Shown: in pieces, positions 21,950 through 57,403 of the stretch
Position numbering within the stretch: the first letter of the stretch is position 1
How the letters are laid out: every line of letters begins with the position of its first letter
Assembly (NCBI RefSeq): GCF_040938485.1
Contig: NW_027271069.1
Coordinates: forward strand, 4,092,001-4,156,000
DNA length: 64,000 nt
Origin: Diadema antillarum
Lineage: Eukaryota
Reading direction: 5' to 3'
Translations under genes and position numbers: made by a program
Notes under the pieces: generated by a model
What the model was told of the DNA's origin: nothing
What the model saw: only the letters and a program-made list of their open reading frames with translations
Database searches by the model: none

Positions 21950-24216
21950 ATAATAATAATAATAATAATTGCATTTATATGGCGCTTCATACTGACGTTT
22001 CTAAGCGCACTTTGCTACTCATACAAATAGACCAGAAAACACAATAACATTAACAAAATTAACGTTAACAGTAACAAAAGAAGAAGAAAGAAAAGAAAAG
22101 AAAAGAAAAATACATGTGATACAATGGTACAATAATTGATAACTGTGTGCGCCTCCAGAAAAAAAAAATATATATATATATATTACAGCTGATTAAACAG
22201 GTGAGTTTTAAGAAGAATTTTAAATGATTCGACAGATGAGGCATTCTGAATATACAGAGGGAGTTTATTCCAAAGAGTGGGAGCAATGGAAGAGAAAGCT
22301 CGTTCACCATAACGGGTTTTTGTACGTGGGCCATGAAGTAATTGGAGAGAGGAAGATGAACGGAGGGGTCTGGCAGAAGAGGAGGAGCGGAGAGAGACTA
22401 GGTCTTGAAGATATATGGGTGCAAGATTACGTGTGATTTTGTACGTCAGAAGTAGGATCTTGAAAGTAATACGGGAATGTACTGGAAGCCAATGGAGTGA
22501 GCGGAGAACAGGAGATATATGGTCATGTCTCCTACTAAGGGAGACTAATCTAGCGGCTGAATTTTGGATACGTTGGAGAGGGGATATGTGAGAAAGAGGG
22601 AGGCCGGCAAGGAGGGAGTTGCAGTAGTCCAGATAGGAGGAGACGAAGGCATGGACGAGTCGCTCAGCTGATGATTGATCAAGCAGACGCCTGATCTTCC
22701 CTATTTTGAAAATACCCCATGATGCAGACTTACAAATGTTTGTGATATGGTGTTTAAGAGTTAAGTGTTTGTCCAAAGTAAAGCCAAGGTCTCTAACACA
22801 GTCAGAGACCTTAATAATCCCATCCCGAGTAGTTAGATCTGGTAGAGGAACTGTGCTCCTAAACTGTGAAGAGAAATGGATGAGTTCAGACTTGTCTTCG
22901 TTCAGACGGAGTCTGTTGGCAGTGGACCAGGTTTTGATGTCGTTGAGACATTCTCTCAGTGAATTAACAGCAGCAATCCTATCGCCAGGTGACATAGTTA
23001 TGTAAATTTGAGTGTCGTCAGCATACATAGCGTAGTTGACTCCATGATGACAATTGATGATTCTGGTGAGTGGACCTGTATAGAGGAGAAAAAGAAGGGG
23101 GCCGGCAACGGATCCTTGCGGAACTCCGCAGCTGATAGGACTAGGACGTGACCAGGTCCCATTGATTATCACCCTCTGTGTGCGATCTTGAAGATATGAC
23201 TTGATCCATTGGATGGCAGTGCCTGTGATGGAATAGTCATTACTAAGTCGTTGTAGTAGCAACGTGTGGTCGAGCGTGTCAAACGCAGCCGAATAGTCAA
23301 GAAGAAGAAGAGCAGCCTCATTGCCCTTGTCGACAGCAAGAAGGAGATCGTTGAGCACTTTCAACAAGGCAGTTTCTGTTGAGTGGAGGTTGCGGTATGC
23401 TGACTGGTTTGTAGGAAGCAGATGATTACTGTCAACATAAGACATTAACTGTGTAGACACAATCCTTTCAAGAAGCTTACTCACAAATGGCAGATTGGCA
23501 ATTGGTCGGTAATTGCTCAGGACATCGGGATCTAGGTTCGGTTTCTTCAACAGAGGGGAAACAAGAGATGTCTTGAAAGGTATTGGAACTATACCCGATG
23601 ACAATGATGTGTTAATGATATTTTTTAGAACCGGAAGCAGCTCATCAAGGCACTCTTTGAGCAGCCAAGTTGGAAGAGGGTCCAGACTGCAAGATTTTGG
23701 TGGAGATAGCATGATGAGACGTCGAAGCTGTTCATCAGTGACTGGATTAAACTCGCTCAGGTTGCAGTTCAAAGAGTTCTCAGGAGCCTGGACGGATAAC
23801 TCCAAATGGTTCACGTCAAATACAAAGGAAGACACAATATCATCGATTTTCTTCATGAAGAATATACTGAACCTGTGCGCCAGTTCTGAGTCAGATGAGT
23901 GTTCAGGATAAATAGCAGAGTCAGAAGGGGTGGACAGTTTCTTCACGAAGTTGAATAGTCGTTTCGAGTCAGCATTGGCGATCTCTTTTCTCAGGTACTG
24001 GGACTTTGCATCAGTAATCAGACTGTAGTACAGCTCACATTCTTGACGATACAGGTCCATGTCAGTCTGCATGCCGGACTTCAACATGCGACGTTCAGCA
24101 CGACGCCGACGACTCCTGGCCTCCCTAACCTCATCAGAGAACCAAGGGGCATTGGGTCTAATTGTCACAGTCACGGTTTTAACAGGGGCATGCTTGTCCA
24201 ACAGATTACTCAGCAT
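21950..24216 (-). mobile_element. 5'-truncated L2-clade LINE with uninterrupted RT frame (677 aa)
   Basis: NYRPIANL, LDYSAAFD, QGSVAGPLLF, YADD, DYCNSLLAG and LHWLPV. The 3' UTR ends in an L2-type stem (gcgcttagaa..aagcgc) and an (ATT)n tail at 21950-21969. No endonuclease domain. Confidence 0.92.
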
Positions 24217-35341: not shown

Positions 35342-37078
35342 CTATGCGAACAGACAAGATCAGAGTCAGTATAAATCGTAGCCCTAAACGTGCGAGTTAT
35401 AGAGGATAATTTTATGATGAGACACGAAGTTGATAATGACCATGTACATGGTAGATGAGACATTGAAAGTTCATGAACTCACTTTCAAGCACTATGAGAG
35501 ACACGTGTGCTATAAAAGTAGACATGATTGAGCGACTTGTGCGTTGTGTATTGTTTTGGCCACCAAATTTTCCTGGTGCTCATGGCTTGATGATTAAATG
35601 GCTAAAAAGTAATTTTGCCGATTCTATTTTCAAGAATAAATAAGTTTTTAGGTAGGGGGATATCATTTGTGTGTATTTTTGAATATACAAATTATTTATA
35701 CACTGTACTATAATTTTCAGCAGCTATGTATACCGGACCAAATATTAAAGAACATCTTTATAATAATGAATCTGAAAATGGGCAATCCAACCATTTTGGA
35801 ATCTTTCATGTATGATTTAGTTTTGGTCTGTGTATCTTTCATGTTAAATGGAGAATACATAAACAAAAACAAACACACAAATATTTTTCATAATCATTTT
35901 CTGATATCCGTGATAAATATAACATTGTTGACCAGAGTCCCAAAGAGGCAGAATACACATGTCATTATACTTGCCTATTTAAAAATACGTGCTACATGCT
36001 CTTCAGGAATTAATGGTCTGCATTTTTTGTCTTAGCATATTATACCTATGTGCAGTGTTTCACCATTTCCTTTACCTTTTACTGATATCTTTCGACAAGA
36101 CGAGTTTCTTAACCCATTCCAAATTGAATTCTGAAATTCCCATAGACTTAATGCACATGCGACCAGGCTCCCCTATTGAATGGATTAAATCCCTTAATAT
36201 CCTGTCGATTCTTTTAACGTGGATTACTTGTCTCCTGCCAGACCACCCAAATCTCATCAATATTTCATTCGAAAGCTGACATAATGGCTTAATGTTGTCA
36301 TGTGTAGATCACAACCAAAAGTACTCTGTGGTCACACAAGGAGAAGTGAAAGTCCACCTTAATATCTTTGTAGAAATTTGTTAAACCAAGGCACGATGTT
36401 AGTCACTTCGTAATAGAGAAAAAAACACAAGTAAATCTGCAGGGGATGGTCTCGGTAAAAAGGTAAGAACTTTCAGGCAAAAAGGAAACCGAAGCAAAAA
36501 AAAAAAAAAAAATCGAATAAATGTCAGATGAAATAAATCGTCGCCTCAATGGAAAAAGGGGTTAACGCATCCGAGCTACGCGGGGCTGCGCGAAAAAAGT
36601 TTTCGAGATAATTGACTTTAAAGGTTTTTTGGCTTCAAAATTGGGTTTAATCAAGGTTGATTCCTTCATTTCTTATATATAGTGTAGATTAACGATTAAT
36701 TACTTTACAAGCGTACTTTCAGCGATAATCCTCATTAAATCTTTGAGTAATTACAATTTTTCCATTAGTAACCTTAATACAGCCATATCTTCGCGTGCTT
36801 TTGAATGGCAAAAAGGGGTTAACGCTAAAGCGCGCGTCGATAACCCCTTCTTGCCATTTAACATCGCACGAACTGACGGTGTTGAAAGGGTACTGTCACT
36901 CCATAACATGTGTGCATTAAGTTTGTCTGTACCCAATAGTGATTTTAACGTAACTGCTAGGCTTTATCAGTCGTGTCTTTTATATACTGTAGTGGGGCCT
37001 TATCCCCATTTTATTACTGGAAAATTCTAAATTATAGGATTCAATATATTGTATTTGTGAGAAATGCATTAACCCCAT

Positions 37079-39676
37079 GGGCAATTCCACGGTAACTCGC
37101 GTTACAAATAATGGGTACATTTTTGGGATAATGTGCCAATATCTTTGTAATTGGTAGGATCTACAAGTTACTTTTTTCATCATGGGTTAAGTAGACATAC
37201 ACCAACTAAATGAATCCAAAAAGAAAAATAAAGGACAAACATGTTGGGATTCTTGAATCATTTAATTTCGGTAACTCGCGTTACACAAAAAGGACATGGT
37301 CAATTCTATGAAGACCTCTTTTTGGAAAGTCTCCTCATACTAGACAATCTTGATAAAAGTTTTCCTACCTTGAATTGATAGTGGGTTAGGACTCATAAAT
37401 TAACAATATCAAAGTTGAGTAACAATGACCTGGAAAAATGTAGGGAGCCTTTATGTCGGTAACTCGCGTTACGGTAACTCGGGTTACATTATGTCCACTA
37501 ACACAGGGTGACACAAATTGATGACATACAATTGTTCTGATGGCACTGAATCTTGTGTTGAATAATCTGAGAGATGCTTATTTGTGTAGATAGTAAAACG
37601 AATAAATGTTAAACAAATATTTTACTAATAAACCCAATAGAAGAGTGTGTTTAAGACTAGTAAGAGCTTCACTCCTCATAGAGACCTTGAATATGTTTGA
37701 ATATATACTAGATGATATGGGTGTATTATTACATTGTAAGTTTCAGAGTGTAAAGATGAAAAATGTTGAAAGTCTTTTTAAAACAAAACATAAAAGTATC
37801 AAACCCTATATACAAGTTTACGAAACAGCTTACAATCTTTCAAAAATTCAAATCCTATCTTTGTGAGGAGTGAAAACTAGTACATTTCTTTGCAGCTGAT
37901 TGACAAAAAGACCAGTTCGTAATTCCACTTTGTGCATGAACAAAAAAAGATCATTTGTACGAACAGGCATTTTGGTTTGTAAATTCACTGACATTTAGCA
38001 TCTGTGATGCGATGATTATTCATGCGATCCTTATCTAAATGATGCTTGCCAGCACATCCACCTGACAGCAAGAATGGTATTTTGCAATATAAACGGAAAT
38101 AAGCTGTTACTGCATTCAATACAAAACAATGAAATGGATGCCTGCTAAATTATAAACTGATGGGAGTATTCTGATCCCCTGATCTAAATGCAAGTTCATT
38201 CTTTTTTTGAACTGAAGTTCCATAAATTGTTATGTCATGCAAGCTTATACATTATGCTGCTTTGAAAACAAGTGAAGTGCCGAACCAACTGAGAAAAAAG
38301 AAAGGTCATTTGTACCAATGTGTACATGAGCTACAGTGTATACGAACTGGCTTATTACCCTACATCGACGTAAATAAGCACTGAATTGATCAGTGTTTTA
38401 GTAGTAGCCATGATAAAAAAGTCATGGGCGTACATACTCAAGCAGTATTCAAACTTACGACCTCCTGATCACCGGACCAGGTGTCATCTCCACTAGACCA
38501 CCGTGCTTTCGCCCGACAGCAAGTAGTGCTGGTTCTAATCCTTATAACATGCAGTGGGTACTGCGTAATTATTCAAATTCATGAAATTCTTCCGTTGAGA
38601 TGTTTTCATTGCAACTGATTGACAAATTGCCCTACATCAACGTTAATAAGCTCACTGAATTGATCAGTGTTTTATTAGTAGCCATGATAAAAAATCATGG
38701 GCATACATACTTGAGCAGGATTCGAACCCACAACCTCCTGATCTCCGGACAGGTGTCATCTTCAGTAAACCACCGAACAAGGATTAGAACCAACACTTCC
38801 TGTGCTTTATAGCATTCTGTAATAAAAATTCTGTAATACTGATGCAGGAAATTCAAAAGATAAATCTAATGGTCTCATTCACTGCTGGATAAATGTACAC
38901 ATGCAGTGAAAGCCAGGCTAGACTCTTCAATGTGGCATGTGATCAGTGGCCTTGATGCTAATCACAGTTTATTAGGCTACCCTCCTTTGTTTCAGTCAAG
39001 CATAGTGTGTATAGCACTGCATTTGATTGTTTTCACCACAATCTAGCTCAATTAAGTGCTAAAATTTGCTTATGTTGGGGGAAACTTGTGTTTATAGTTG
39101 GTAACTCGCGTTACATGCCGGTAACTCGCGTTACATGGTAACTCGCGTTACACTTTTCATTGACATTTTTTAATGTGATAACAGTGTTTATTCAAGTCAA
39201 CATCCTGTGTACAGTATCAGGGTGTGATGAATTTAGAAAATTATGATTCCCAACAAATTACCTCCACTGCTTCCTTCAGAATGAAAAATATTTCTTGTTT
39301 CGGTAACTCGCGTTACATGGCTCAAGGGCTGAACTTTCATGTGGTGATTAGAATTTTTTGAAGGTGGCATAAAAATTTCCTCATGGGAGACTGAAGTAGA
39401 ACCAATTTGCTTCTTTAAAATGAATTAATTGAAGTGCTAGCAGAATTTTTCTATTAAAAAAAGTTATATCAAGTTAAGCATGCATTTTAGCAATTTGGAT
39501 GACAGAAAAATTGTCTTCAACATTTGTAGCTGTTTCTCGGGAAATATTTGACCGATTGATATAATTCTTTGAGTTTCTTTAACTTCAATATATGGGTAAT
39601 ACATAATGAGTAATTCTTTTGCAATATGATAAAGTTGAAATTTTAGTGCCATGTCCACATTCCCATGGAATTGCCC
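37079..39676. mobile_element. Nested non-autonomous Sola2-type element
   Basis: TIR gggcaattcca / tggaattgccc with 4-bp TSD CCAT (37075-78, 39677-80) and a GRG terminus. Eight internal copies of ggtaactcgcgttac. Confidence 0.75.
38358..38775 (-). mobile_element. Two tandem tRNA-derived SINE copies
   Basis: The minus strand reads cggtggtctagtggagatgacacc..ggaggtcgtaagtttgaatac and ..ggaggttgtgggttcgaatcc (A/B-box-like), each followed by the same body as 3121-3235. Confidence 0.7.
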
Positions 39677-39683
39677 CCATGCA

Positions 39684-40090
39684 TACCAGACCACATTCCT
39701 AAGAGGACATCAATCGCTTTTTAGTATTAAAATTAGCAACATAAATTTCTTCATTTCTAAGTCAATTCTACGAAAATGTATGCTTTGTGTATACAATATG
39801 GCATAAAAACATTTGGCAATCCTTTCCAATCGAAAAAGTTGCCAATTTGCACCTACAACAGTGTATAGAATTATGTTGCCAATTTAAGGATTTGCAGCTT
39901 ATTTTGCCTTTAGATAATTCCTGCAAGCTATTTCAACATATTTTGCCCGTGACAAAAGGGGATAATATTTTGCAGCATTGGTTATTTCATTTGGTACATA
40001 ATTCATAATTTTTAAAGAAAAAAATAATCAAGAGTTACGCATAGATAATACATGTATATTGTACGAGAAAATTTTGAATGTGGTCTGGTA
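39684..40090. mobile_element. MITE
   Basis: 15-bp inverted ends taccagaccacattc / gaatgtggtctggta. Confidence 0.65.
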
Positions 40091-42704
40091 CTAAGCACAG
40101 AGATAGTTTTGGGAATGAAAAACAGAAAATAAAATAGAACTTGCTCTTTATATCTTAAGACATTCTCGCAAGTGTTTCTAAATAATTTTCACGCTTTGAA
40201 CAAATATTAGACTAACGATTTATTCATAGTTACACCTTGTAAACTATAGCTGATAATGTGCATGTATTCATTCGAATGCCCTCGAGACCATTCTTAAATA
40301 ACTCACATAAATTATTTAGAAATTAATGAAGAAATTTAGAGCAATTACTACTGCTCAATGACTTGGCACAATGATCATGATCAAAATTAATACTACAATT
40401 TTTTGAGAAGTATTTTTCAAAGGTTTTCAGATTTATCAAAGCTATCTTTGTGCTTTAATGGTCTAATGTAGCTGACCAATGAAATACCAACAATGAAATC
40501 AAATCAAACACCATGTATGTTCAAATGAGTTTATTATATATATATATATATATATACAGCCAATTAACATTTAAATTGCGGCATCGGTCTACCTGACATG
40601 ACACTTTTAAGCTATATATTCAAAATTTGAAGTCGATAAGTCACGCGAAATTCAAATAATACACATAAACAATACATGATTGATAGTTCTTGCTCAGACA
40701 ATTGACATGTTTATTTGTTGAAATAATAGGTTTCTGCGTATAATTTGAAAAAAAAACAAATGTTGAACATATTATTCATTATTGTAGAAGATGTTTTGGA
40801 AAATATTGTAATAATATGGTAAAAATAAGGACTTCACACATCATTACATAATTACAAATAGGGACTGTAATACAGACTAATATTTGTTTCGAGGTATGAA
40901 AAAAGGTCGTTTGAAATTTAACGGCATAATGTTTTGCGTGTATACATCAAGATTCCAAACGTGAAAGCTTCAGATTGTCTAAAATTACATTTTAATCAAC
41001 TTACGATGTTGCATAGCTATTCAAGGAACGAACCATCTTTAAGGCAGTTAATACAATTAAATTCATTTTATTTATTTTCTCAAAGTTACCTCATTTTTCC
41101 ACAAAATGACCTCTGTGACCTTTGACCTTTAACCCAATGACCCCAAAATCGAACCAAAGTATTATTCCCCCCCCCCCCCCCCCATATACCCTCATACTAA
41201 GTTTGATGTCAAACCATCACGGTTCTTGAGATATTGAAAAAAACAAAATGGGACGGACATACGCACGGATGGACGACCCGAAAACATAACGCCTGCGGCC
41301 ACTTCGTTGGCGGAGGCATAAAATATGAAACAATGCTAAATATCAAAATATTATTCACTTTCTTGTTCATGCTGTGCAGATATAGTTACGAAAGTGAAAT
41401 CGACAATTAGATTAATACATTTCGAATAATACACAGTGTTGCATCTATGCAGGACTTGTGATGACATTCTGCCAGGTATATACTCGCGTCTCTAACTATG
41501 ATACTTTTTCAAAACTTGTTGACATTTTTTTACTGTTCTTGCCTTTATTTACATTAATATGAATTCATGCTCTCCTTGCTGTCATTGCATCGCAGAATAT
41601 CCAAATGCTAATCACAATTATTAGTTATGTTGTGAAAGTAGTCTAAGAAAGTGAAATCGTGGCATTTCAAATTGCAACTTAGAAATCAATTTTCAAACAA
41701 CACATTTGTAATTTTGCAGGGCATGTCACATTCTTCCAATACTTACATTTCAAAAAATAAAGATAATGGTGTAAATTAAGCATAAATTTTCTTCACTTTG
41801 GGCGAAAAACCCCATATCTCATCAAGTTCATCGGAATATTTTGAAATACAAGAAGACATGTATTCAAATTTCCCAAGGTTTGAGGATTTGCAGATTCGAT
41901 TCAATTCGTTTTGTAATTTATTATGATACAATTGTCACACAAGCACACATTATACCAGGTATTTCTGTAATTATTGTTAGTGTCCTTATTTGCACTTAAT
42001 TTTGAATATTTCGAATTACCAATGGAAAAACAGAATTCCTAGAATACATTTTAATTTATCCAAAAATGTGTACATACTTACTGTATTTTGTAAGTACAGG
42101 CCTACGTGTTCAATCTAAGTAATGTCCAAGTCCAAGTCATTGCATTCTCCCTTCAATGTGGTGCCCTAGTTGGGCAAAACGAAGTAAGCGACAAAAGTGA
42201 TACTCCTTGTAATGACCAAAATGTGTCTCAAATTTGCAAGGGCATCAATGGAATATCACAATGTATAACCTATTATATCTCTGAGCAAGGTGAGTGTTTG
42301 TGCATTAAATTTGACTTGGAAGAAGAGCACATTAGGTGTAATATAAAAACGTCAATTACTCAAATTTGGATGGTATGTCTCTTGATTCCTTTTACCAAAG
42401 TAAGGCAGTATGAAATCTAAAGTTCCATTCCATATGCTAATAGGCTCTAATGCAGACATCAGGTTGGCTCATGTTATATACTGTATGTGTATCTCCGCCT
42501 TAAAGTTAGAAAGTCCTTTTGCAGACTTCCCTAAATACACCAAACACTGTATACAACTAATGATACTAGTATTTGGATCATGTCTGTGAAATGTCAAAGT
42601 CGCAAGATGTGTAGAATTCAAACGATGCACAAGAGTACTACAGCTGTATATGTATTTGTACTGTCGTCTGTGTTCAAGCCACAACAGTAGGCCTACAATA
42701 TGAT

Positions 42705-44468
42705 TCACTGTTCGGATGTTTGATGCATGTGTCCATCATTTTCCTCCTCCTCGGATTCATCACTCTGAGACTGTTGTACCTCTGTCGTGAGGTTTTCATA
42801 GTAGCTGTGATACATCGATGGGATAATGTTGTCCTTGCACAAACTAAGCAAATCTTGCTTCTTTTCCCTTGAGAGGGCGAGATGTTGCTTGTACAACAGA
42901 GGCAGACGCATGTCATTTCTTCGACTTGAGCCCGAGACGCGAACTTCTACGAAGTCTTCGTTGAAATCATACTTTATTTTGATGACAGAGGGGTCTGTCC
43001 TCTGTACGCGGATCTGACGAATTTTCAACCAGTTGACGGGATTGCCAGCCCTGTCCTTCTTCATGTACTTCACACAGGGTGTTGTCAACTGACGCAGATC
43101 AAGGAAGTCCTCTTTCGTCATGTGGGTAACTTCATACCGATTCCTGTTCCTTGCTGTTTGAATAACTGGTATCCACTGGTCGGGGTGATGGATTGTCACT
43201 CCCCTTTTGTTCCTTTCGATGCAGGAATGCATCGCGTCACATTCCATTTGAGTATGTCCGCTGATCAAGAATTTATGGTCAATGATGGCAACATTAGTGT
43301 GCAGAACTGCATATAGCAAAGTGCAAGCTATAATTCTGTTCCGATTTTGGCCTCCACAGCAGTCAGAAAAGAAACTTATGTGTGTGGTATCAGGATCAAG
43401 TGACTGCATGAACTTTAAGAGGCATGAGCCAATCTCACATGCTCCCCGCTTCGCTGTAGTCTCATGCCAGACAAAGCAATTTCCACATGCAGTAGCCTGG
43501 TTGTATACAGTGAAATTATACGTAGACATTTTCCGCTTGTAATAGAACGAAGATGTCTGGCCATAGGGTGTAGTCAAGACCTGTTGAAGATCAAAAGTAA
43601 AGGAGCTAAAGATTGGATCGATCTTTGCTCGTTCCTTGTCTCTTTGTTTCTCTTCTCTTGCACTTTCCTTTTCAGCAATGTGTTTCTTGTAGTTCTGCTC
43701 TTTAACTTCCCTTTCTTCCGGAGTTGAATTATTGAATGAAGCACATGTGTTACATTCATCTTTCTTCGGATGATGAAATCCCAAATTATATTGGGAATTG
43801 AAAATGTTTCTATACACTGCGAAGGAAACTGGTTTCGATACAGACGATTCGTACATTGCGTACATCTTGGAAACGCTTAAAGAAGGGTCCAGATATTTCC
43901 TTTTTGAAGACGCACGACAGTAATGTGATTCAACAACAGGAAATGAATCAATGTGTTCACATACTTTTTTAACATCTTCTTCTGAAGTTTTGTTCACTGA
44001 CGGTAACTTTCCCCTCCTGTCTTCTCGTGCAAACGGGCCTTCATACTTCTTCAATGTATACTCAATAAGCTTGGAACCAATTCCCAAAGTACTGAGAAAG
44101 AAATGTTTGCACACTCGTTCCCTTTGTGATGTGAGCGGGAGATGGTATTTGTACATGTGACGCACTCGCTTCTGACTTTTTCTCTTTTTTCTAGGTATTG
44201 CTTTGGACCGAGAAATATGGTGATGAATAAAATCTCGCTGACGGGTGTAGGAGCCCGTTTTCCAGTAATCCTCAAACAATGTTTTCCTGTCTTCATCAGA
44301 GAACTTAGAGAAGCACTTATGGGGACATTTTGTGTTACACTTCTTTCCTATCTTTCTGGCAGGGATTGTTTTATTACGTACAACATATTCCTCTCCCCGA
44401 TTACGTTTTCTTGACTGCTGTCTTTTCTTCCATTCTTCTGGATTCCGTTTTCTCTTCCTCCCACGTTT
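42705..44468 (-). CDS. Sola-like DDD transposase catalytic exon (587 aa to stop)
   Basis: Uninterrupted frame after the acceptor tatttcAG|AAA. Motifs VCKHFFLSTL, ESHYCR, PKKDECNTC, FDLQQVL (D), SDCCGGQNRN (D) and GHTQMECDAMH (D). The superfamily call comes from motif recall, not a search. Confidence 0.88.
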   Translation of the reverse strand, partial: KRGRKRKRNPEEWKKRQQSRKRNRGEEYVVRNKTIPARKIGKKCNTKCPHKCFSKFSDEDRKTLFEDYWKTGSYTRQRDFIHHHISRSKAIPRKKRKSQKRVRHMYKYHLPLTSQRERVCKHFFLSTLGIGSKLIEYTLKKYEGPFAREDRRGKLPSVNKTSEEDVKKVCEHIDSFPVVESHYCRASSKRKYLDPSLSVSKMYAMYESSVSKPVSFAVYRNIFNSQYNLGFHHPKKDECNTCASFNNSTPEEREVKEQNYKKHIAEKESAREEKQRDKERAKIDPIFSSFTFDLQQVLTTPYGQTSSFYYKRKMSTYNFTVYNQATACGNCFVWHETTAKRGACEIGSCLLKFMQSLDPDTTHISFFSDCCGGQNRNRIIACTLLYAVLHTNVAIIDHKFLISGHTQMECDAMHSCIERNKRGVTIHHPDQWIPVIQTARNRNRYEVTHMTKEDFLDLRQLTTPCVKYMKKDRAGNPVNWLKIRQIRVQRTDPSVIKIKYDFNEDFVEVRVSGSSRRNDMRLPLLYKQHLALSREKKQDLLSLCKDNIIPSMYHSYYENLTTEVQQSQSDESEEEENDGHMHQTSEQ

Positions 44469-46598
44469 CTGAAATAGAAAATAACACATGATTAACTCTT
44501 TCTTTCTCCTTGCTACAAGTAGCACACAGAATGTAAAAAGGAAATTTGTTTCATAAGTTTATTGTAAAAAAGTGGGAATATACTGAAGGTTCAAAAATAA
44601 TCCACAGAAACATGTCAATATGCAAGTGAAAAGTCAATATTAGATATGGGCCATGTTTCGTGAATACAAAGGTACTGTCCTACACTGAACCGTTTAGCGT
44701 CTAAAAACGTATGCGTTTTTCAGCGAGTTTACAGACGTAAATTAGAGGTCGAAAAAACGGCACGAGGCAGTTCTCATATTAGTTTCCCTAAAATTCTGCA
44801 ACAGTAAGTAATAATGATAATAATGATTGATGAGATTTGTAATGCGGCAAATCCACTCTGTAGAATGCTCCACGCGAAAATAGAAGAGTAAGATAGAAAG
44901 TAAATTATTAATACAAGGCATGGGTAATCAAAAGGTAGCATTAAAGAAGTGAGTTTTAAACTACTTTTAAAGGACTCTGATGAAGAGCAAAGTTTATCTA
45001 ACTAAAAGGAGATTATTCCATACAGTGGAACCAGTCTGATCCTTGTGTGCCCCAAGTTGTAGCGAATTTTGGAATTTAGAATTTAGAAACTAAATTTCTG
45101 GCGCGTTTGCAATGGACTTGATTGTAAGCTATTGCAAGTCTGTAATTGAACTACAGTACATAACCCGTGTATGAAGAGCCAATCACACTTTCCGAAATAA
45201 GCAGTTACTAAGTGTAGATAATGATTTGACAGAGATTTTTGTTGTTGAAATACTGCTCATATTATCATAATTCATGACACCTTTTATATCATATAATCAC
45301 CTCAGACTGACTGTCTTGAACCTCGTGCATGTTATCTTCATGTTGGGTATGCTGACCCTCTTGATGCTCGAGGGAGTCACGGTCACCTTGATCTTGCTCC
45401 GTCTCATTTATTTCATCCTTCGAGTGATATATGGAGACAAGAAGCCAACGTAAGAGCATTATCTGAATATCTAACTGGACTCAGTAAAACAAAAAGAAAC
45501 AGAGAATACAAAAAGGGGGTTAAATTTTTAGCAAAGTTTTCATTAGCCTTTCAAAAGCTTTGAAGGTGCCTGTGATGACATGTTAATAGTTTTAACTGAA
45601 AGCCCATGCTGTCTTCAGGGAACTATGTTATAAATTCACAAATCTATGAATTAAGAATAAAAAATATCGCTTTTATTCAAAACACGGGAAGAGGCTGCTA
45701 TCGTTCTGCCTGGCTAAATTTGAAGGAGCTTAGTCAATTGCCGTTATGCCATCAGGAGAAATAAGCAAAATGCTAGTACAAGCACAATTGATATGATTGT
45801 TTTAATAAGTTTGTGATTTAGAGGACTTATTGATAAGGAGAGCCTTAAAGACATTATGTCCCTTTTGCATTGAATTTGTGTATACAATTGGTGTAAAACA
45901 ATAAGGTATATAATGAAGAAGACACTGTTACAAAAACCTTTGTGTAGTTTTTAGACCTGTAGGGTCTTCATTTGTGAAGTACAAACTACCGTTATAATTT
46001 GAATTTATTTTTTCGAACCTCGAAAAAATATATTAGTCTCTGACACAGTCCTTTTTAATTACTTTTTACAAAATATTGAATAATGTCTTCTATAATGTAC
46101 ATTATGTTCATAATGTGTTTTGTAATTTAAATTACACACAGATAACTATTATTTCAAGAAACAAAACTTCCAAGTGTCTGAGCAAGACTATCTCTCATGC
46201 ACTGTTTACGTGCATTATTTGAATTTTACATGATTTAACTATTTCACATTTTGAATATACAACCTGCCCACCATGCTCTAGGGTTTACAGATGTTTGGAT
46301 GGTTTTCTGCTGATCTGCAAAAAGGACGATATGTCTTTAATTGTGTGATTGCTTGTTGTCACACTGATTTATATTTGAAAGAGAAGAAAAAAATCCGTAT
46401 TACCTTCTGCTGTTCAGCATCATCAAGGTTAAGTGAGACCTCCGGGTCTGGCTGCTCACGGTCGCTTCGCTCTCGCTCGAAGTCTGCATGGTTAAGTGAG
46501 ACCTCCGGATCTTGCTGCTCACGGTCGCTTCGCTCTCGCTCGAAGTCTGCATGGTTAAGTGAGACCTCTGGATCTTGCTGCTACAGTCTGTAACATCC

Positions 46599-46635
<37 letters not shown>

Positions 46636-49600
46636 ATCAAACAGAAATTTAATTCTCATAAAGAACTAAACGCAATTTCAATTATCTATAATTAGTACGA
46701 GTCACACACAATGCATCAAAACATATCTGGTTTCAATTCCGACACTATTTCCGTTTACATGTGAACGAAGTGTTGAAGATTTCTTGTTTAGTTCTTATGC
46801 TATCTGCATTAGTTTGTTCGCAAGAAGAAATCAATATTAGAAATATTAGTTCATTTCCATTGACTTAAGTTTTTGTTTGATTTTGATTACAACATAGAAA
46901 CATTAGAAATAATCATATGTTGTGGTACAGTCTCTGAAGAATTAGAATAAATATTGACTGGCAATGTTTATCACATTCAAGTTCATGTATGCATGTGTAT
47001 ATTGAATAACGAGCTCCAAGCTTACTGTAAGTCACCATGACAATATTTTTTATGAGAAGTTCATGAAAATAACAATAGTATGTCAAGGTCTGTCTACTAT
47101 GTCAAGTATGTGAAACCTCACGCGGAATTATTGGTGAACTGTTAGTATTTAGTTTCTTTTTGATATTTTTAAATTAAAGCTTAGACTTAACGTGCTAACT
47201 CTTACCTCCCAAGCTTTGCCATCGTGACAACTGCAAGGATCCTTTGCGACAAAATGTTCATAGCAGATCAGCTTCCAACATGTCATACATTCCTGGTAAA
47301 CTTCACGAGTACATCCTCTATTACAACAGAACATAGGTAGGCCCTGTTGCAGTTCATACAACGACTCAGGAAATGCTTGACTTATATCCAAGAAAGTACC
47401 TAAAATGGAAAACAAGTTAACACTCGTTGCCGAATTCCAATCACTTTAACTTTTCATTTATATTTCCATTCAATTGATCAAATGCCTCTTTTTAGTAAAA
47501 CAACTAATTACTTTGAATGATTCCAAACACATTATCAAATGTCAGTTGCCTTATTGCTCACTTGTGTTTAAAGGGGGCGTGGCTCATTTCCATTTTGGAG
47601 ATGGCTTACTTCAAGTCTTCGACAACAGATTCATTTTCATGTTTTCACACTAATGAAATTATAACCTCTTCGCCCGATATGTTAGAGAGGACTTGTATGT
47701 TGTTTTATCTTACACTTTCAAATCAATATTCCCTTATGACCATGAATTAGGTAATTACGTAGAATGTGACAGCCAACATTGTTTTAACTAACTGTTACCA
47801 ACTCATGGCTTAAGTAATACATAAAATTATATTTCACACAAATAATACCCCACCGTCGTTACCAAGAAAAATGGGGTAGCACTGGAAAATGACATATGCC
47901 ACTTATTCATATTAATTCACTTCCAAAATTTTAATAAGATTTTGTTGTTGATATTATAACCATGTGATATTTATTTAACTGTAAGAACGTATACATGAAT
48001 TCTGTATCGTGTCTGCTTTGCTATCCTGCTCCTTAATTCAGTTTCCGGACTGCATACAATAATAATTTTATTTCACTAGGGTTTGCAGACTTGACATCGA
48101 ATGGATGGTCATAAATGGAATTTAACAAAATTGTAGATGAATTACCCGAACTTGTGTCGATTTTGTTTTCTTTTAAGACACATACTGTCATACAGTCCCA
48201 TTTGTAAATGCAATAATATATAATTTCTATTCAAGCAACCTGACCAGTTAAATTCAAGCCATTTACATTTCTCTAATTCCCATAAACTCTGGCACATGCC
48301 CATAAAACGGCTGTGCGTTCTGCCAATAATAATTTCTTATCATATATATCCACTATTGATCTTTCATTCAGGCTATTCGCAAAGTATATGTTGGTTGACA
48401 ATTCTTAATCTTAATTGAGTACCTTTTGGGGTCAATTCTGGTAGAGATGACTCATCTCCACCATCCTCGTCATTAGTATCTGTTCCCACCGCTTCCTCAA
48501 TAGAGTCTCCAGAAAATTGCATGGGCTCAGTGGCCTGGTAAATGTGGTCCATTCCTTTAAAAAAATGTTACAGAAAACTCTAGCATTTAGTTCATGTTTC
48601 CTTTTCAACAAATTATGATAAAAGCAATTGGATAGGTTTCACGAAGTGCTAGCAATTTGTTATCATACGCACTGCTGCTAATTAAGGGGCTTTCACAATC
48701 GGTCATGTGATCGCTTGCGATTGCTTGCGATCCTGTACAAAGTATACTATCAAGAAATAATGGCAATAGCGATCGCACAACCAATTGTGAAAGCCCCTTT
48801 CCCCAGACAAAAGGGGTAGCCATCGAAAAATTACATGTGCCACTTATTTCCTTTCATTGTCTTTCAAAATGTGAACAATATTTTGTTGGTGATATCATAA
48901 CCATGTGATATTTATTCCAACTGTAAGAACGTATACATGAATTCTTTATCGTGTCTGCTTGGCTATCTTGCTCCTTAATTCAGTTTCCAGACTCCATACA
49001 ATAATCACATTTATATCACTAGGGTTTGCAGATTTGACATCGAATGGATCATCATAAATGGAATCTAACAAAATTGTAGATGAATTACCCGAACTTGTGT
49101 CAATTATATTTTCTTGTCAAGACATATACTGTCATACAGGCCTATTTGTAAATGAAATAGATATATAATTTCTATTCAAGCAGCATGACAAGTTGAATTC
49201 AAGCCATTTACATTTATCTAATTCCCGGAACTCTGGCATATGCTTGTGAAACGGTTGTGCTTCTGTCAATAATAATTTCTGAACATCGTATATCCACTCT
49301 TAATCTCTCATTCAGGCTATTCGCAAGTTATATGTTGGTTAACATTTCTTAATCTTAATTGAGTACCTTTTGGGGTCAATTCTGGTAGAGGTGACTTATC
49401 TCCACCATCCTTGTCATTGGCTGTTCCCACTGATTTCTCAATTGAGTCTTCAGAAAGTTGCATGGGCTCAGTGGCCTGGTTAATGTCATCCATTCCTTAA
49501 AAAAAAAATGTTACAGAAAACTCTAGCATTTAGTTCATGTTTCCTCTTAAGTATATTATAATACAAGCAATTGGATAGGTTTGACCAAGTGCTAGTCATT

Positions 49601-52600
49601 TGTTATCTATTATAATTATGTCACAGGAAGACTTTAGAATACGCAGTAGAATACTATAATGAACCTGTCCCTAAAAGTATTTCAAATAATGCAGATAAAT
49701 TCTCACGCTCATTTAAATTTATGTGTGTGCTAATTTATATTTATATAAACACACTTTGTTCAGTCAATTCTGCCAAGGACAGCTCGTCAGCATTACGGTA
49801 GTTGGTTATGTTCATTTTTATCATATTTCATTGACCAGAATGACTCAAATCCAGACCTGCACTTTGTTGTGATCAACATCCATGGACGAATTAAGCTAGG
49901 CAATTACAAATTGGTATAGTGCAATGTGTTTTAATTTTTATTTGAAATTTTCCTTTCCATACCTGGCTTAATCAATTCTGCTAGGGGCAAGTCGTCGTCG
50001 TCGTCACCACTGTCGTCTTTGTCACTACCATGTTGTCTGGGCTGGGTTATGTGGTTCTTTCCTGAAAGAGTATGCAACAAATCACTCGAAAACAATGGCA
50101 ACTTTTAGAATGTTTTCTTCCAGCAAATCATAATACAAGCAGTTCGATAGGTTTGACCAAGCTCTAGTCTTTTATCATAATTATGCTCAGGAAGACTTTA
50201 GAATACGCAGTAGAATACTATAATGAACCTGTCCCTAAAAGTATTTTAAATAATGCAGATAAATTCTCACGTTCATTTAAATTTATGTGTGTGCTAATTT
50301 ATATTTATATAAACACACTTTGTTCAGTCAATTCTGCCAAGGGCAGCTCGTCAGCATTACGGTAGTTGGTTATGTTCATTTTTATCATATTTCATTGACC
50401 AGAATGACTCAAATCCAGACCTGCACTTTGTTGTGATCAACATCCATGGAAGATTTAAGCTAGGCAATTACAAATTGGTATAGTGCAATGTGTTTTAATT
50501 TTTATTTCAAATTTTCCTTTCCATACCTGGCTTAATCAATTCTGCTAGGGGCAAGTCGTCGTCGTCGTCACCACTGTCGTCTTTGTCACTACCATGTTGT
50601 CTGGGCTGGGTTATGTGGTTCTTTCCTGAAAGAGTATGCAACAAATCACTCGAAAACAATGGCAATTTTTAGAATGTTTTCTTCCAGCAAATCATAATAC
50701 AAGCAGTTCGATAGGTTTGACCAAGCTCTAGTCCTTTATCATAATTATGCTCTGGAAGAACTTCAGAATATGCAGTCAAAATAGTATAATGAACTTGTCC
50801 CTGATGTTAATGGAATTGAATATCTGTCAATGATTTTTTTTTTTTTTTTTAAAGAGGGAAATTACAAGCACGTTACTCTCTACCACTTTACCGTAGCTGG
50901 TTTTTTTTTTCTGTATATACCTGGCTTGATCAATACTGCTAGGGGCAAGTCATCGTTGTCGTCACTGCTGTCGTCTTTGTCACCACGATGAAGCACTGAT
51001 TCATTCTTGGCATCGGTAGTAGAAAGTTCCTTAAGTGGGCCTTCGAAAAGTTGTCTGGGCTGGGCTGTGTGGTTCATTTCTGAAAGAGTATATCAGAAGA
51101 GAAGTGTGTAAATAGATATTGGCAGAGTAGCACAACGTTAACCAAGGTACACAGACCATACGTGTTCTAATTGTTCAGGAAATTATTGCACTCGGTCCTT
51201 ACACATGTTATTGTTTGAACTATACAATTCTGGTTTTAACAATCAACTTTTTTGGATTCTTATTAAATTTCTTGTTCTACCATTTCAAATCTTATCTTTA
51301 CTTAACACTGGCCGATGACTTTTGTTTTGAACATATTAATTGTAATACTCACTTTACTCTCCTTATCAAGCTGTGACAACATCTCAGTCTCAGCTAGTTG
51401 TATTTCAAATTATTACAATCACATCAACACACCGAAGGTGACTGAGATTAGTTCCATTAATATTGAATCCTTTGTTTTCGTTATCCTATCATTTTAAAGA
51501 AATACATTGGTTGATATGGGATGCCCCAATACAATCTCGCACAAATCATTACAAACCTTGTTGGGTTGAATTAGCACGAGGAGACTCCTCTTCTTTTTCG
51601 ATGTAGGAGCTGGTACTTGGGGCTTCATCATCACTGCAGTCATCATCATAAATTTCCTCAGTGTCTATAATTGTCGCCTTCCAGATGTCCTTCCTCCTTT
51701 TACCACATTTCATTGCTATTGTATTCCCTGGTAGAGGAAGTCCGATACATTTCACCTCACTCAGTTTGACGACATTGCGGGATTTATCTCTTTTCCATTC
51801 CACATACATCAAGAGGTCAGTTTCAGGTCCAGGGTGAACACCACTGTCACCACTGACGTCTTTGTCACTACCATGTTGTCTGGGCTGGGTTATGTGGTTC
51901 TTTCCTGAAAGAGTATGCAACAAATCACTCGAAAACAATGGCAACTTTTAGAATGTTTTCTTCCAGCAAATCATAATACAAGCAGTTCGATAGGTTTGAC
52001 CAAGCTCTAGTCTTTTATCATAATTATGCTCAGGAAGACTTTAGAATACGCAGTAGAATACTATAATGAACCTGTCCCTGATAATGTAGAGTTGTAAAAA
52101 TGGAATTGAATATCCGTCAATGATTTTTTTTTTTTTAAAGAGGGAAATTACAAGCACGTTACTCTCTACCACTTTACCGTAGCTGGGTTTTTTTTCTGTA
52201 TATACCTGGCTTGATCAATACTGCTAGGGGCAAGTCATCGTTGTCGTCACTGCTGTCGTCTTTGTCACCACGATGAAGCACTGATTCATTCTTGGCATCG
52301 GTAGTAGAAAGTTCCTTAAGTGGGCCTTCGAAAAGTTGTCTGGGCTGGGCTGTGTGGTTCATTTCTGAAAGAGTATATCAGAAGAGAAGTGTGTAAATAA
52401 ATATTGGCAGAGTAGCACAACGTTAACCAAGGTACACAGACCATACGTGTTCTAATTGTTCAGGAAATTATTGCACTCGGTCCTTACACATGTTATTGTT
52501 CGAACTATACAATTCTGGTTTTAACAATCAACTTTTTTGGATTCTTATTAAATTTCTTGTTCTACCATTTCAAATCTTATTTTTACTTAACACTGGCCGA

Positions 52601-54490
52601 TGACTTTTGTTTTGAACATATTAATTGTAATACTCACTTTACTCTCCTTATCAAGCTGTGACAACATCTCAGTCTCAGCTAGTTGTATTTCAAATTATGA
52701 CAATCACATCAACACACCGAAGGTGACTGAGATTAGTTCCATTAATATTGAATCCTTTGTTTTCGTTATCCTATCATTTTAAAGAAATACATTGGTTGAT
52801 ATGGGATGCCCCAATACAATCTCGCACAAATCATTACAAACCTTGTTGGGTTGAATTAGCACGAGGAGACTCCTCTTCTTTTTCGATGTAGGAGCTGGTA
52901 CTTGGGGCTTCATCATCACTGCAGTCATCATCATAAATTTCCTCAGTGTCTATAATTGTCGCCTTCCAGATGTCCTTCCTCCTTTTACCACATTTCATTT
53001 CTATTGTATTCCCTGGTAGAGGAAGTCCGATACATTTCACCTCACTCAGTTTGACGACATTGCGGGATTTATCTCTTTTCCATTCCACATACATCAAGAG
53101 GTCAGTTTCAGGTCCAGGGTGAACACCACTGTCACCACTGACGTCTTTGTCACTACCATGTTGTCTGGGCTGGGTTATGTGGTTCTTTCCTGAAAGAGTA
53201 TGCAACAAATCACTAAAAACACACAGGCAATTTTTAGAATGTTTTGTTTCAGCAAATTATAATACAAGCAGTTCGACAGGTTTGACCAAGCTCTAGTCCT
53301 TTATTTTAATCATGCTCAGGAAGACTTTAGAATATGCAGTAATAATGGTATAATGAACTTGTCCCTGATAATGTAGATTAAATGAACTTTCAATTTCACG
53401 CTCACTTATCTCTACATAAGTGCTAATTTATGTATATTACACACCCTGTTTAGTAAATTCTACCAAAGGGCAACTCATCAGCATTACGGAAGTTGGCTAT
53501 GTTTATTTATACATTAAATTTTAATTGACGAGATCGACTCCAATCCTGCAATTCGTTGTAATCAACATACCTTGAAGAATTAAGCTAGGTAATTTAAAAA
53601 TGGAATTGCATATCTGTCAATGATTTTTTTTTTTTTTTTTTTAAGAGGGAATTTACAAACACGTTACTCTCTACCACTTTACCGTAGCTGGGGTTTTTTC
53701 TGTATATACCTGGCTTAATCAATACTGCTAGGGGCAAGTCATCGTCGTCGTCACTGCTGTCGTCTTTGTCACCACGATGAAGCACTGATTCATTCTTGGC
53801 ATCGGTAGTACAAGGTTCCCTAAGTGGGCCTTCGAAAAGTTGGCTGGGCTGGGCTGTGTGGTTCATTTCTGAAAGAATATGCAATAAATCACTAAAAACA
53901 CTGGCAATATTTAGAATGTTTTCTCTCAGCAAGTTATAATACAAGCAGTTTGATAGGTTTCACCAAGCTCTAGTCCTTTATTATAATTATGCTCAGGCAG
54001 ACTTGAGAATGTGCAAGTAAAAATAGCGGGATTTATTACTTTTCCATTCAACATACATCAACAAGTCAGTTTCAGGTCCAGGGTGAACTGGATGAGTGAA
54101 ACATACAAGTATTTGAGTACTTTTAGAGTACGGTAATTGGGTTAATAGTTTCTGCCAAACTTCATTTCAGTTATTTGCTCTAAAATTAATAGATATTAAT
54201 CTGCATTCATGCCAAGGAATAAACACATAGATATTCCGTTTAACTTTAAATTACATTTAGCCACTTAGCTGCATACTAAAGTACATCACAAATGTTATAA
54301 ATATTACAAAATTATTACAAATTAAAAGACGGAGCGAATAGCATTCTTATACATCATGACATGGAAATGTCATATAACATTCCCCTCCCCTAACATTTGA
54401 AATTGAATATATCCGGCAACAAACGATGGATCAATTTTAAATGGCATTTTCACCCTTACCATCAGACTTGTTCTCCAGAGGCCCTTCCAT
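42705..54490 (-). CDS. Predicted full multi-exon transposase gene (14 coding exons, ~1304 aa)
   Basis: Exons: 54490-54460, 53868-53710, 53189-52842, 52364-52206, 51904-51557, 51079-50921, 50625-50527, 50061-49963, 49495-49367, 48554-48423, 47399-47206, 46580-46404, 45417-45301 and 44468-42705. All are GT-AG, phases match, and the total is 3915 nt with no internal stop. Confidence 0.65.
44805..45130 (-). mobile_element. Degenerate L2-type LINE 3' fragment in a transposase intron
   Basis: Remnant STVWNNL..FK..KTHFF and an (ATT/ATC)n tail at ~44805-44828. Confidence 0.55.
46420..46580 (-). repeat. 63-bp coding minisatellite (~2.6 units)
   Basis: Unit encodes QQDPEVSLNHADFERERSDRE and lies inside exon 46580-46404. 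Confidence 0.9.
47780..54090 (-). repeat. Complex tandem array of exon+intron units
   Basis: Periods of ~940 bp (D exons), 564 bp (A exons) and 1285 bp (B+C pairs, near-identical). The intron motif aagcagttcgataggtttgaccaagctctagtc is shared across units. Confidence 0.92.
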
Positions 54491-56239
54491 GCTGACGTCT
54501 ATATGATTGTACTGTGAGGCTTCCAGTAACAGTTAAATGGTGTCCTAAAATGATTTAAGAGGATACAGATACAGAAGATTTACATATATTTGATATTTTA
54601 TATGGAATTCACGAGCCCACTGTAAATCTGAAAATGGTATAGATCTAAGGGTTGTCCAAAAGGTCAAGTAAAGAGGGTAGTTTTCAGGGCAGCTGGACAT
54701 GTCATGTACGCAACGTGAATACTGAAAACGGTATGAAATTCAGTCATAATGGCTGTCCAAAAAATTGTATATTTTTGTGCTGTTACGTACTTACGGTCCA
54801 CTCCAGTGTCATTTTTTGTTTTGTTAAATGCAAATGGACAAATGGATGGGTTTACGCAATGCAAATGACGTTTTTTTAGAAAAATAGAATGGTGTTCCAC
54901 GTCTAGATAGAGATCTAGACAAACTCAAACTACAGTATATCTAAAGACTTAGCATATTATTGAGGTAGTGGCTATTCTTGCGACGAGTCATCGCTCGCAC
55001 AGCCACTGACTTAGCCACAGTCGGTATTTTGTGTATCGCGAGATAGCTAGCGATAGACGAGTCTACTTGTCTAGTCTCTAGTAGAGGCATAGATCAATCT
55101 ACTCGTGAAATAGGCCCCATCACTACAAATACATATGATATGGGACCTTACATGCTGATCGATCATAACTCTCTATATCAAATTACTGATCGCGCTCAGA
55201 ACCAACAGATGTGAATTGTACAGACTACAGCTAGGGCCTACAGGATTTATACGGCAGTGGGGCTGGTGAGCACAGTATCATAGATCTACTCGTGTTTACG
55301 ACCCCACCAAACGGCGTTTGCGCGCTGTTACCACATTGGTGGGGCTGATATCCACCGTGCATCTTTTATATAACCCTAAACCTAACCTATCAATATGTCG
55401 CGATTTCCTTAACCCTCGGCCTTGAATCAGTCTCCTACATGTATATCAGGATTTCCCCAACCCTACCTAGGCCGTGAGTCTGCCTCCTTATCGCGATCTT
55501 CCTAACCCTAGGCCGTGAATCTGTCTCTTATATCGCGATGATCGATTCAAGTAATGGGGCCGGAAACACGATTTTGCCTCTCTAACGTTAGAATCTAGAA
55601 ATATTACCTAACGCTAGATCTAGATTTTACACAAAATAATGAATGGGGCTGTGCGAGTGACGTGACAATGTAGGACTTAAGTTCGAAGCCGATATCGACC
55701 CTACCCGTGATCCGATCTCGCTCAAAATTTGGAAGACTGACTTGATGTTTGAGAACATTTCCTGCGAGTGTAACTTATTTAGATCTAGATCTAACCACTA
55801 GTGTTATGTTAGGTCTATCTAGAGTCGAGCCTCTAAATGTTAGGTCTAGAAATTTCGTGAAATTCTACTCGGGAGAACATATATTATGAGCATGGATACG
55901 AAACTAAATTAGCGCCCAAACTAACATCTAGATCTAGGGTCTATACATATCTATACATATCTAGACCTTTTCTATATTCTATAATATTAAAATTATAGAC
56001 CAGATCTAACTTTAGTCTCAGACTAGATTATAGTCTAGGTCTATCTAACTACTTACTAACTTAGATCTAGAGTTTCTAGATCGAGGTCCAGCAAATCTAA
56101 ATTGTAAGTAATCCTATGAGAATCATGCTGCTAATTCTACAAAAAAAACAACCCAACAGCAATTAAAATAGTGTTAACATAAAGTCGTCTAACTTAATTA
56201 GATCGGCATTATCGTGAAATAAGTCCCCAGTCCATTCAC

Positions 56240-56700
56240 TGCCGTTTATTTCGTCAGTGCTGTTGCCCGTTACCCTCTCCCATCGACTTTGTATACGGAG
56301 CGAGCGCACGAGCGAGGTGAGTGGTGGCTGATTTCACGATTTGGCCCTTAGATCGATCTAGATCTACTAAGGTTTATCCTTACCATTTTTCCGATTCGTC
56401 TGAACTCTGACGTTCGTCGTCGATCACGGGTAGATCTACGGAGTATGAGATAGTTGACGTCCTTCAATTCAGCAGTCCAATGCAATTAATGATATCATAT
56501 TGAAGTCAATTTTAATACCGGTAGACTCTGCGTACTAACCGTACCCATTATGCATACTGTACATGTACATGGCATATTGAGCATGCAGCCGATGCGCTAG
56601 CTCATCTCAGGCGGCGCGCGCGCGCGCGTCAGTACAGTTAGAACGACGATAACGCCTTTTCACTTGTCAGGACGCATTGCAAGCGAAATTACGAGAAAGC
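56240..56700 (-). promoter_or_regulatory. CpG-rich candidate promoter and first exon of the element's gene
   Basis: CpG-rich stretch just inside the right end, including ggcgcgcgcgcgcgcg. The exon ends gaaaaATG|GTAAGG (ATG 56386-56384). Confidence 0.45.
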
Positions 56701-57403
56701 GTTATGTGGTTGTGCATGAACGATAACCCCTTTATGCTTCTCGTACCATGCTTTAGGCAAGAGAAGCGAAAGAGCGCATTCACGTTAACCCCTTTTTGCT
56801 ACCACAAAGACGTGCATACGGCACGTTATCGCCTTTTTCTTTTGGGATTTTTTACAAAATTAGATCGAATTTGACATATCTGTTGATATGAAAATGTAGC
56901 TCATGCCATCTGCTTTCGAATGACAAATTTTTATTTTCTTGGAAAATTTGAGCCCGAAGGTGCGCTAACCCCTTTTTCCATTGAGCCGACGCAATATTTC
57001 ATCTGGCAAACTTTTTTGTTTTTCTGTGCTTTACCCTCACTTTAGTTGCAAGTTGGAAAATATATTAAAAAGCGTTGAACAAACTCAATAATAATCTAAA
57101 ATTCAGAGAGCATTTTTTACTTCTCAATACTAAACCACTAAATACATGTAAAAGAATTAACTTTAGAGTTGACTCTATACAATTAAATTTCAGAGCACAA
57201 TTTTGTTAATATACAAGTTGACTGATCGAACAATAAGCCCAATCCTGTTGAAATCATCAGTGTTGACCATGATGAATTTCCGACCGATTTGGCACATTGT
57301 TGCTACCCTCCAATGTAACACGCGAAAACAAAAGCAGTTACCCTCGGGTAAAATGAAGACGGATTAATATACGACGTTCGCATGCTCTTTTATGGTGGTA
57401 TTA

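Follow-up and report, generated by a model that had tools for sequence, protein, structure and literature searches.

Evidence that a 20-kb locus of Diadema antillarum is a young insertion of a Sola1 transposon family with a multi-exon gene

Is a long, intron-rich transposase gene lying between inverted ends a recently arrived mobile element or a transposase kept by its host? The question is raised by a 64,000-nucleotide stretch of the genome of the sea urchin Diadema antillarum (assembly GCF_040938485.1, contig NW_027271069.1, positions 4,092,001 to 4,156,000 of the forward strand; hereafter the window). A first-pass annotation, made from the letters alone, had described a giant Sola-like element at 36525-57006 whose intact frame was taken to suggest selection, meaning recent activity or domestication. 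Our analysis indicates that the region is very probably one insertion of a very young, multi-copy Sola1 cut-and-paste transposon family. The element occupies 36539-56991 and carries a 14-exon gene on the minus strand; at 20,453 bp, or 17,858 bp without a nested insertion, it deserves its description as giant and intron-rich.

Near-identical copies of the element are found at unrelated places in the genome. Two NCBI protein models derived from its transposase (806 and 849 aa) are encoded on three other Diadema antillarum contigs (L001, L002 and L003), where similarity to the window is ~99% and is confined to 56991..39675 and 37079..36537-9. Nothing beyond these limits aligns, the flanks of the four copies are unrelated, and similarity ends at the same base on both sides. 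In a four-way alignment with the window copy, L001-L003 have lengths of 17,304-17,863 bp, and each is bounded by a perfect 4-bp target duplication (ACAC, ATAT and GCAT). Pairwise substitution divergence among the four aligned copies is 0.10-0.39%. Accession lists and a further copy, L005, bring the family to at least six loci with at least four independent insertion sites, and intact transposase frames are present in L003 (1317 aa) and L002 (1284 aa). The family thus shows features expected of an active, autonomous transposon, namely near-identical copies, unrelated sites and at least one intact frame. The recent activity proposed earlier is borne out by these closely similar copies with their own target duplications, and the family may be active today.

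Comparison of the copies fixes the boundaries of the element to the base. All four copies begin CGTCGGCTCAATGG and finish CCATTGAGGCGACG in base-level comparison, and the ends and the nested insertion of the window copy are made up as follows.

36539-56991, minus strand: whole Sola1 element, as delimited by the alignment of L001-L003
56963-56991, minus strand: 5' terminal inverted repeat (gene orientation), starting CGTCGG, the same in all four copies
36539-36567, plus strand: 3' terminal inverted repeat, starting CGTCGC, matching the other end at 27 of 29 positions
36535-36538, unstranded: left 4-bp target duplication, AAAT on the plus strand, from base-level comparison of the copies
56992-56995, unstranded: right partner of the target duplication, CAAT, a 3/4 match to AAAT
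56992-57008, unstranded: flanking half of a palindromic target site, not present at the ends of the other copies
36810-36824 (plus strand) and 36838-36852 (minus strand): subterminal copies of the motif AAAAAGGGGTTAACG, candidate transposase binding sites
56721-56838, minus strand: three subterminal copies of AAAAAGGGGTTAACG, at 56721, 56783 and 56824
37080-39675, unstranded: nested 2,596-bp non-autonomous element, in the window copy only, from the alignment of the copies

Of the 29-nt terminal pattern the window holds exactly two occurrences, one at each end of the element, where 0 are expected. Repeat finding returns a longer inverted pair, 36522-36569 / 56961-57008 (48 nt, 88% complementary), which overruns the element by 14-15 nt because the window copy was inserted at the midpoint of a palindrome (CAGATGAAATA ... 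TATTTCATCTG). These outer 14-15 nt lie in the flanks, where 36522-36538 and 56992-57008 mimic longer inverted ends. The inverted ends placed at 36525 and 57006 therefore exist, with their termini at 36539 and 56991 and the rest palindromic flank. They are not diverged, as had been supposed: the 29-nt repeats differ at two positions, the same two in all copies. The statement that the ends share a motif stands, as AAAAAGGGGTTAACG occurs seven times in the window (two or fewer mismatches), always within ~315 nt of the ends, where 0.13 occurrences are expected; these repeats are putative transposase binding sites. The insertion site of the window copy (36499-36538 and 56992-57035) is a palindrome with perfect 11-nt arms and an A-rich run on each side, and the three other insertion sites are not clearly palindromic.

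Several nested insertions had been reported, of which a single one, 37080-39675, proved specific to the window copy. It possesses 13-nt terminal repeats GGCAATTCCAYGG, six subterminal copies of GGTAACTCGCGTTACA and a 6-bp target duplication, CCCATG, at 37074-37079 and 39676-39681.

The catalytic core of the encoded protein relates the element to the Sola1 group. The Sola superfamily, including Sola1, was reportedly described by Bao, Jurka, Kapitonov and Jurka in 2009. The only long open reading frame (ORF) of the region, rightly noted before as the one piece visible in the ORF list, encodes 606 aa on the minus strand (42705-44525) and matches Pfam DUF7869 with 31.4 bits (curated cut-off 26); a literature search for the term DUF7869 gave no match. 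Its nearest database proteins are the 806- and 849-aa 'uncharacterized' NCBI models of Diadema antillarum, 100% identical over 97% of the query, behind which come hundreds of proteins of 35-50% identity, found in echinoderms, molluscs, insects, a nemertean, crustaceans and fish. RNase H cores of Repbase references, Sola1-1_AP (clade E.10) among them, are printed in a supplement to Majorek et al. 2014 (PMC3985635). Exon 14 of the gene carries the Sola1-1_AP blocks FDL..VLTTP, FYYKRK, YNFTVY, KRG, EIG.CLLKF, SD.CGGQNRNR and GHTQ in the same order at residues 292-404, with ~60% identity over ~62 aligned residues in a comparison made by eye and pattern, without an E-value. An intact DDD core had been claimed, and the triad, D293, D369 and D411 of the exon-14 translation, is indeed invariant in 30 homologues from five phyla. 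In an AlphaFold2 (AF2) model of the core (mean predicted local distance difference test score, pLDDT, 84), strands and helices follow the RNase H order, D293 falling on strand 1, D369 on strand 4 and D411 on the following helix. The nearest solved structures found by Foldseek are the cores of TnsB, retroviral integrase, MuA and IstA, all DDE recombinases.

All Sola1 features that we checked are present, namely core similarity, a DDD triad in an RNase H-like fold, a 4-bp duplication and terminal inverted repeats. Sola2 and Sola3 belong to the same superfamily and have 4-bp, often AT-rich, duplications in common with it (PMC3627910), but neither the Sola2 core (DFAENYT...TDGCAGQ) nor the Sola3 core (DYCQKVL...SDNASSY) occurs in the window protein. 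From the blocks in common with Sola1-1_AP and the contrast of its core with Sola2-1_HM and Sola3-1_HM we assign the element to the Sola1 group of the Sola superfamily, in line with the Sola identity first proposed. A review that cites the founding paper (PMC10741241) describes Sola elements as encoding DDD enzymes, with 4-bp target duplications, terminal inverted repeats of 11-1124 bp and sizes that are mostly 2-9 kb and in some cases >15 kb. The window element lies at the upper end of this range, and relatives of 900-1056 aa are common in the database, so the premise of elements of a few kb with transposases of ~600-800 aa was too narrow. It further differs from the Sola1 group in its 14-exon gene, in N-terminal Tudor-like and zinc-finger-like modules and in an internally amplified array of symmetric exons.

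The transposase gene can be assembled from 14 exons. An independent rebuild of the chain reproduced the stop-free frame of the first-pass annotation exactly (3915 nt, one terminal stop, 1304 aa), with AG/GT signals at all introns; the start of exon 12 used in that frame, 46580, is not the acceptor of the family, which lies at 46597. The chain consists of an ATG exon (54490-54460), nine symmetric exons (exons 2-10, phase 1) and the last four exons. The small upstream exons are of four kinds, each with a pyrimidine tract, an AG acceptor, a GT donor and phase 1 at both ends. Mapping of the NCBI proteins gives six exons, from 49493 to 42708.

54460-54490, minus strand: exon 1, ATG, 10 codons and 1 base, donor G|GTAAGG; start shared with the NCBI 242-aa model
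53710-53868, minus strand: exon 2, type C, acidic DDxDDLPLAxLIKPG motif, phase 1-1
52842-53189, minus strand: exon 3, type A, predicted Tudor-like barrel, phase 1-1
52206-52364, minus strand: exon 4, type C; its donor is passed over in the NCBI 242-aa model, which continues to a stop at 52177
51557-51904, minus strand: exon 5, type A, second Tudor-like copy, 347/348 nt the same as exon 3
50921-51079, minus strand: exon 6, type C, identical to exon 4
50527-50625, minus strand: exon 7, type B, short and acidic
49963-50061, minus strand: exon 8, type B, missing in L002 (568-nt unit deleted)
49367-49495, minus strand: exon 9, type D, ATG of the NCBI 849-aa model; 1-nt deletion in L001
48423-48554, minus strand: exon 10, type D, ATG of the NCBI 806-aa model
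47206-47399, minus strand: exon 11, Cys-rich, zinc-finger-like, sub-threshold Transp_Tc5_C match, conserved in urchin relatives
46404-46597, minus strand: exon 12, 21-aa acidic repeats, family acceptor before 46597
45301-45417, minus strand: exon 13
42705-44468, minus strand: exon 14, basic stretch, Cys-rich region and Sola1 RNase H-like core
47859-54100, minus strand: tandem-duplication array with units of ~943, 564 and 1285 nt, multiplied symmetric exons, length variable between copies and sequencing runs

Between exon 4 and exon 9 the repeat units of the array are 97-100% identical, and tandem duplication of symmetric phase-1 exons would have inflated the gene to 14 exons (1317 aa in L003). 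A contig of sequencing run X4, which is labelled as a different organism, goes back 943 nt at 48123-49065; this points to a recombinant or an extra 943-nt unit, so that array length would vary between individuals or species. The 943-nt unit also contains a 32-nt inverted repeat with a 52-nt loop (48684-48799), located in the intron that precedes exon 10. The non-coding parts of the element contain no further ORF of note.

An internal inverted pair, 40615-40790 / 46086-46259 (~175 nt, each arm near (TA)n), brackets exons 13-14; old short-repeat insertions or an internal inverted duplication are possible origins. We rejected these arms as the true ends of a 5.6-kb core element because they are only ~79% alike, lack the CGTCG terminus, lie inside all copies and would leave out exons 1-12.

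NCBI annotation of the other copies follows the same exons. Exons 1-3 together with exon 4 read through its donor correspond exactly to a separate 242-aa gene in L001 and L002, and the 849-aa model consists of exons 9-14. The annotation therefore supports the junctions 1-2-3-4 and 9 through 14, and no model joins exon 4 to exon 9; we infer that the 14 exons are joined on one mRNA. The NCBI model of the window copy runs from 44489 to 42705 and starts at an ATG in intron 13. The L005 copy has a 9.3-kb insertion (L005:878-10216) in the TA repeat of intron 11, and the 881-aa NCBI model at this locus starts in the insert and splices past the 3' end of the element into a different Sola-like fragment.

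The window copy itself has probably lost the frame that the family uses. In L001-L003 exon 12 is 216 nt long and begins after TATGTAG, whereas the window copy lacks 22 nt between 46583 and 46582, 15 nt into the exon, a deletion that shortens the exon to 194 nt and shifts the frame. With the family acceptor the window frame meets a stop at codon 687, before the catalytic domain; the 3915-nt frame is open only via a copy-specific cryptic AG abutting the deletion, with exon 12 read from 46580. Under the family splice pattern the frame is intact in L003 (3954 nt, 1317 aa) and also, although exon 8 is missing, in L002 (1284 aa), and L001 has a 1-nt deletion in exon 9, so that two of the four copies, the window copy included, are frameshifted. 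The gene is thus probably frameshifted in the window copy, and the long multi-exon gene probably real as a feature of the family. The window copy is a slightly decayed member, marked by the exon-12 deletion and by 2.6 kb of foreign DNA inserted into its 3' non-coding part. The canonical unit measures ~17.9 kb, with 29-nt terminal inverted repeats starting CGTCG and 4-bp target duplications, and would carry a single minus-strand gene whose last exon encodes the Sola1 DDD catalytic domain; to the upstream exons we assign a zinc-finger-like module, acidic repeats and, as the most likely reading, one or two Tudor-like barrels.

The intact frames are a matter of copy youth and not of selection. Differences between copies are fewer in exons (6/3815) than in introns (41/7394; Fisher p=0.0017), and the differences in exon 14 are three synonymous and no non-synonymous ones; all these counts are small. 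Exon-versus-intron conservation between the array units is confounded by the unit breakpoints and was not used as evidence of selection. As the copies differ by only 0.10-0.39%, youth alone accounts for the open frames, and the earlier argument from an intact frame to selection falls, the more so with two of the four aligned copies frameshifted under the family splice pattern.

One of the N-terminal modules, that of the type A exon, bears a weak predicted likeness to chromatin-reader folds. The type A exon has no Pfam match, and an exhaustive search with it returned, besides the exon itself, only an 86-aa relative and two repeat proteins that are spurious, almost nothing outside urchins. In an AF2 model from a shallow alignment of four sequences, residues 29-84 form a barrel with a pLDDT of 84-93. 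Its predicted four to five strands come closest, in the PDB, to royal-family Tudor domains, those of ARID4A (RBBP1), ARID4B and the hybrid Tudor of KDM4, with weak scores (E 0.02-0.3), and a domain-atlas look-up gave low-score leads to PWWP, BAH and Tudor. The likeness is one of predicted fold, and 'Tudor-like' is used here as a lead rather than a finding. Exon 11 matches the Cys-rich C-terminal domain of Tc5 transposases (Transp_Tc5_C) with 23.1 bits, below the threshold of 27.4.

This N-terminal architecture is common to Sola1 proteins of other sea urchins. The type A domain begins at residues 2-7 of P0005 (D. antillarum), P0008 (S. purpuratus) and P0004 (L. variegatus); after it comes, in all three, the same D-rich acidic '[IL]PL' motif, and P0004 and P0008 then continue with the Cys-rich module known from exon 11. 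P0005, in which the domain starts at residue 5, is encoded by a sister-family element.

L004:7374-22231: sister-family element encoding P0005, 14,858 bp

The sister element is flanked by the target duplication ATAT, ends in perfect 29-nt terminal repeats starting CGTCG and has eight or more exons, some of them small and repeated; it was inserted into an intron of a Slo/BK potassium-channel gene that runs on the opposite strand. Its transposase is 45% identical to that of the window family, from which it differs in the terminal repeat after CGTCG, in the internal repeats, in an annotated product of 807 aa and in being seen as a single copy. Since this family of like build is found beside the first, large size and intron-rich genes are a trait of this Sola1 lineage of urchins. 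Around L004:15100-15514 the sister element also contains part of its transposase exon a second time, in inverted orientation.

Several observations weigh against the reading of one long gene in a young transposon. The target duplication of the window copy, ATTG/ATTT in gene orientation, is imperfect. In the NCBI annotation the gene is divided in two and the product of the window copy has only 594 aa, no annotated or assembled protein of the family exceeds 881 aa, and a search with the N-terminal 262 residues of P0002 as query found no longer isoforms. Contigs of four sequencing runs were compared with 44400-50399: three runs cross introns and look like DNA, and the fourth, possibly RNA, gives two short unspliced contigs (44400-44536 and 49162-49325); no stretches of N were encountered. 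No spliced transcript was found among them, the sole joint being an array-length variant, a comparison that speaks neither for nor against the gene model. The between-copy differences in exons 1-13 are all non-synonymous (three, with no synonymous ones), and the divergence between exons 9 and 10 is close to that of their introns, with three synonymous and nine non-synonymous codon changes; constraint on the upstream exons is therefore weak.

These points lend themselves to two other accounts of the upstream exons. The element might instead hold two genes, a transposase of 806-849 aa starting from the ATG of exon 9 or 10 and a separate 242-aa Tudor-like protein from exons 1-4(-8), which would end at an A-rich tract after a type C exon. 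NCBI EGAP, drawing on 12 RNA-seq runs for assembly GCA_040938485.1 (PMC13511894), gave exactly these two models at several copies, exons 9 and 10 both begin with an in-frame ATG, and the longer protein is not on record. The exact repeats at 50.5-53.2 kb, however, would keep reads from mapping uniquely and might have split the gene artificially, the 242-aa model owes its end to read-through of a good donor site, and the same phase and good splice signals run across exons 2-10. Homology also favours one gene, because the Tudor-like domain and the transposase share one polypeptide in P0004, P0005 and P0008. We therefore regard two products as possible but doubtful. Alternatively, the upstream array could be cargo captured from a host gene (transduplication) with no role in transposition, as the near-neutral divergence and the scarcity of relatives and Pfam matches for the Tudor-like exon would allow. 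Against this, the order of Tudor-like domain, acidic motif, zinc finger and Sola1 core recurs in the 45%-identical paralogous family of the same genome and in two other urchin genera, so that any capture must be old and retained, and passive cargo seems improbable. Conversely, the Tudor-like modules, multiplied by symmetric phase-1 exon duplication, might act as chromatin readers that steer integration of a Sola1 transposase to particular chromatin. A literature search found no paper linking Sola1 with Tudor-like or zinc-finger-like modules, and we put this idea forward tentatively, as rather unlikely.

Two further explanations concern the copies as a whole. Segmental duplication, or haplotype duplicates in a diploid-size assembly, might have produced them without transposition; the assembly spans 1.75 Gb with heavy haplotype duplication (PMC13511894 and a bioRxiv draft), and one further place is 'similar' to L002. 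Yet the four loci stop at the same base at both ends, between unrelated flanks and each with its own 4-bp duplication, and we consider this origin extremely unlikely. The same verdict, in effect a near-negligible chance, applies to a domesticated transposase gene kept by the host, to which the long open frame and the wholly synonymous exon-14 differences might have pointed. A domesticated gene would be a single-copy locus without transposon ends at one syntenic place; what is found is a multi-copy, near-identical family with terminal repeats, frameshifts in two of four copies and at least four independent insertions with target duplications, which excludes the domestication raised in the first-pass annotation. 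An insertion of a young Sola1 transposon with a single long gene is the reading that we retain.

Elsewhere in the window, three other kinds of coding sequence were seen.

22183-24216, minus strand: ORF of 677 aa, probably from a retrotransposon, with a reverse transcriptase domain (RVT_1, E 7e-32)
1856-2605 and 10470-11543, plus strand: ORFs with RING and B-box zinc fingers (TRIM-like), possibly exons of tandem paralogues
19320-19922: fragment of a rhodopsin-type receptor

Overall, the element belongs to a known transposon group as an ordinary member, though a very young and well-preserved one, notable for its size, its exon array and its appended modules. To our knowledge, transposition of a Sola element has yet to be demonstrated by experiment, and no structure from the superfamily has been solved; copies that are 99.6-99.9% alike, with at least two intact long frames, make this family a concrete candidate for tests of both. 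With copies of 18 kb, the family shows its enzyme to be capable of moving large DNA, and the 'uncharacterized protein' models of 594, 806, 849, 881 and 242 aa are explained as pieces of one transposon gene. The exon array offers a clean natural case of protein lengthening by symmetric-exon duplication in a mobile element. If the Tudor-like modules did serve targeting, their number, which varies between copies, would mean that the element is evolving its own targeting domain while it spreads.

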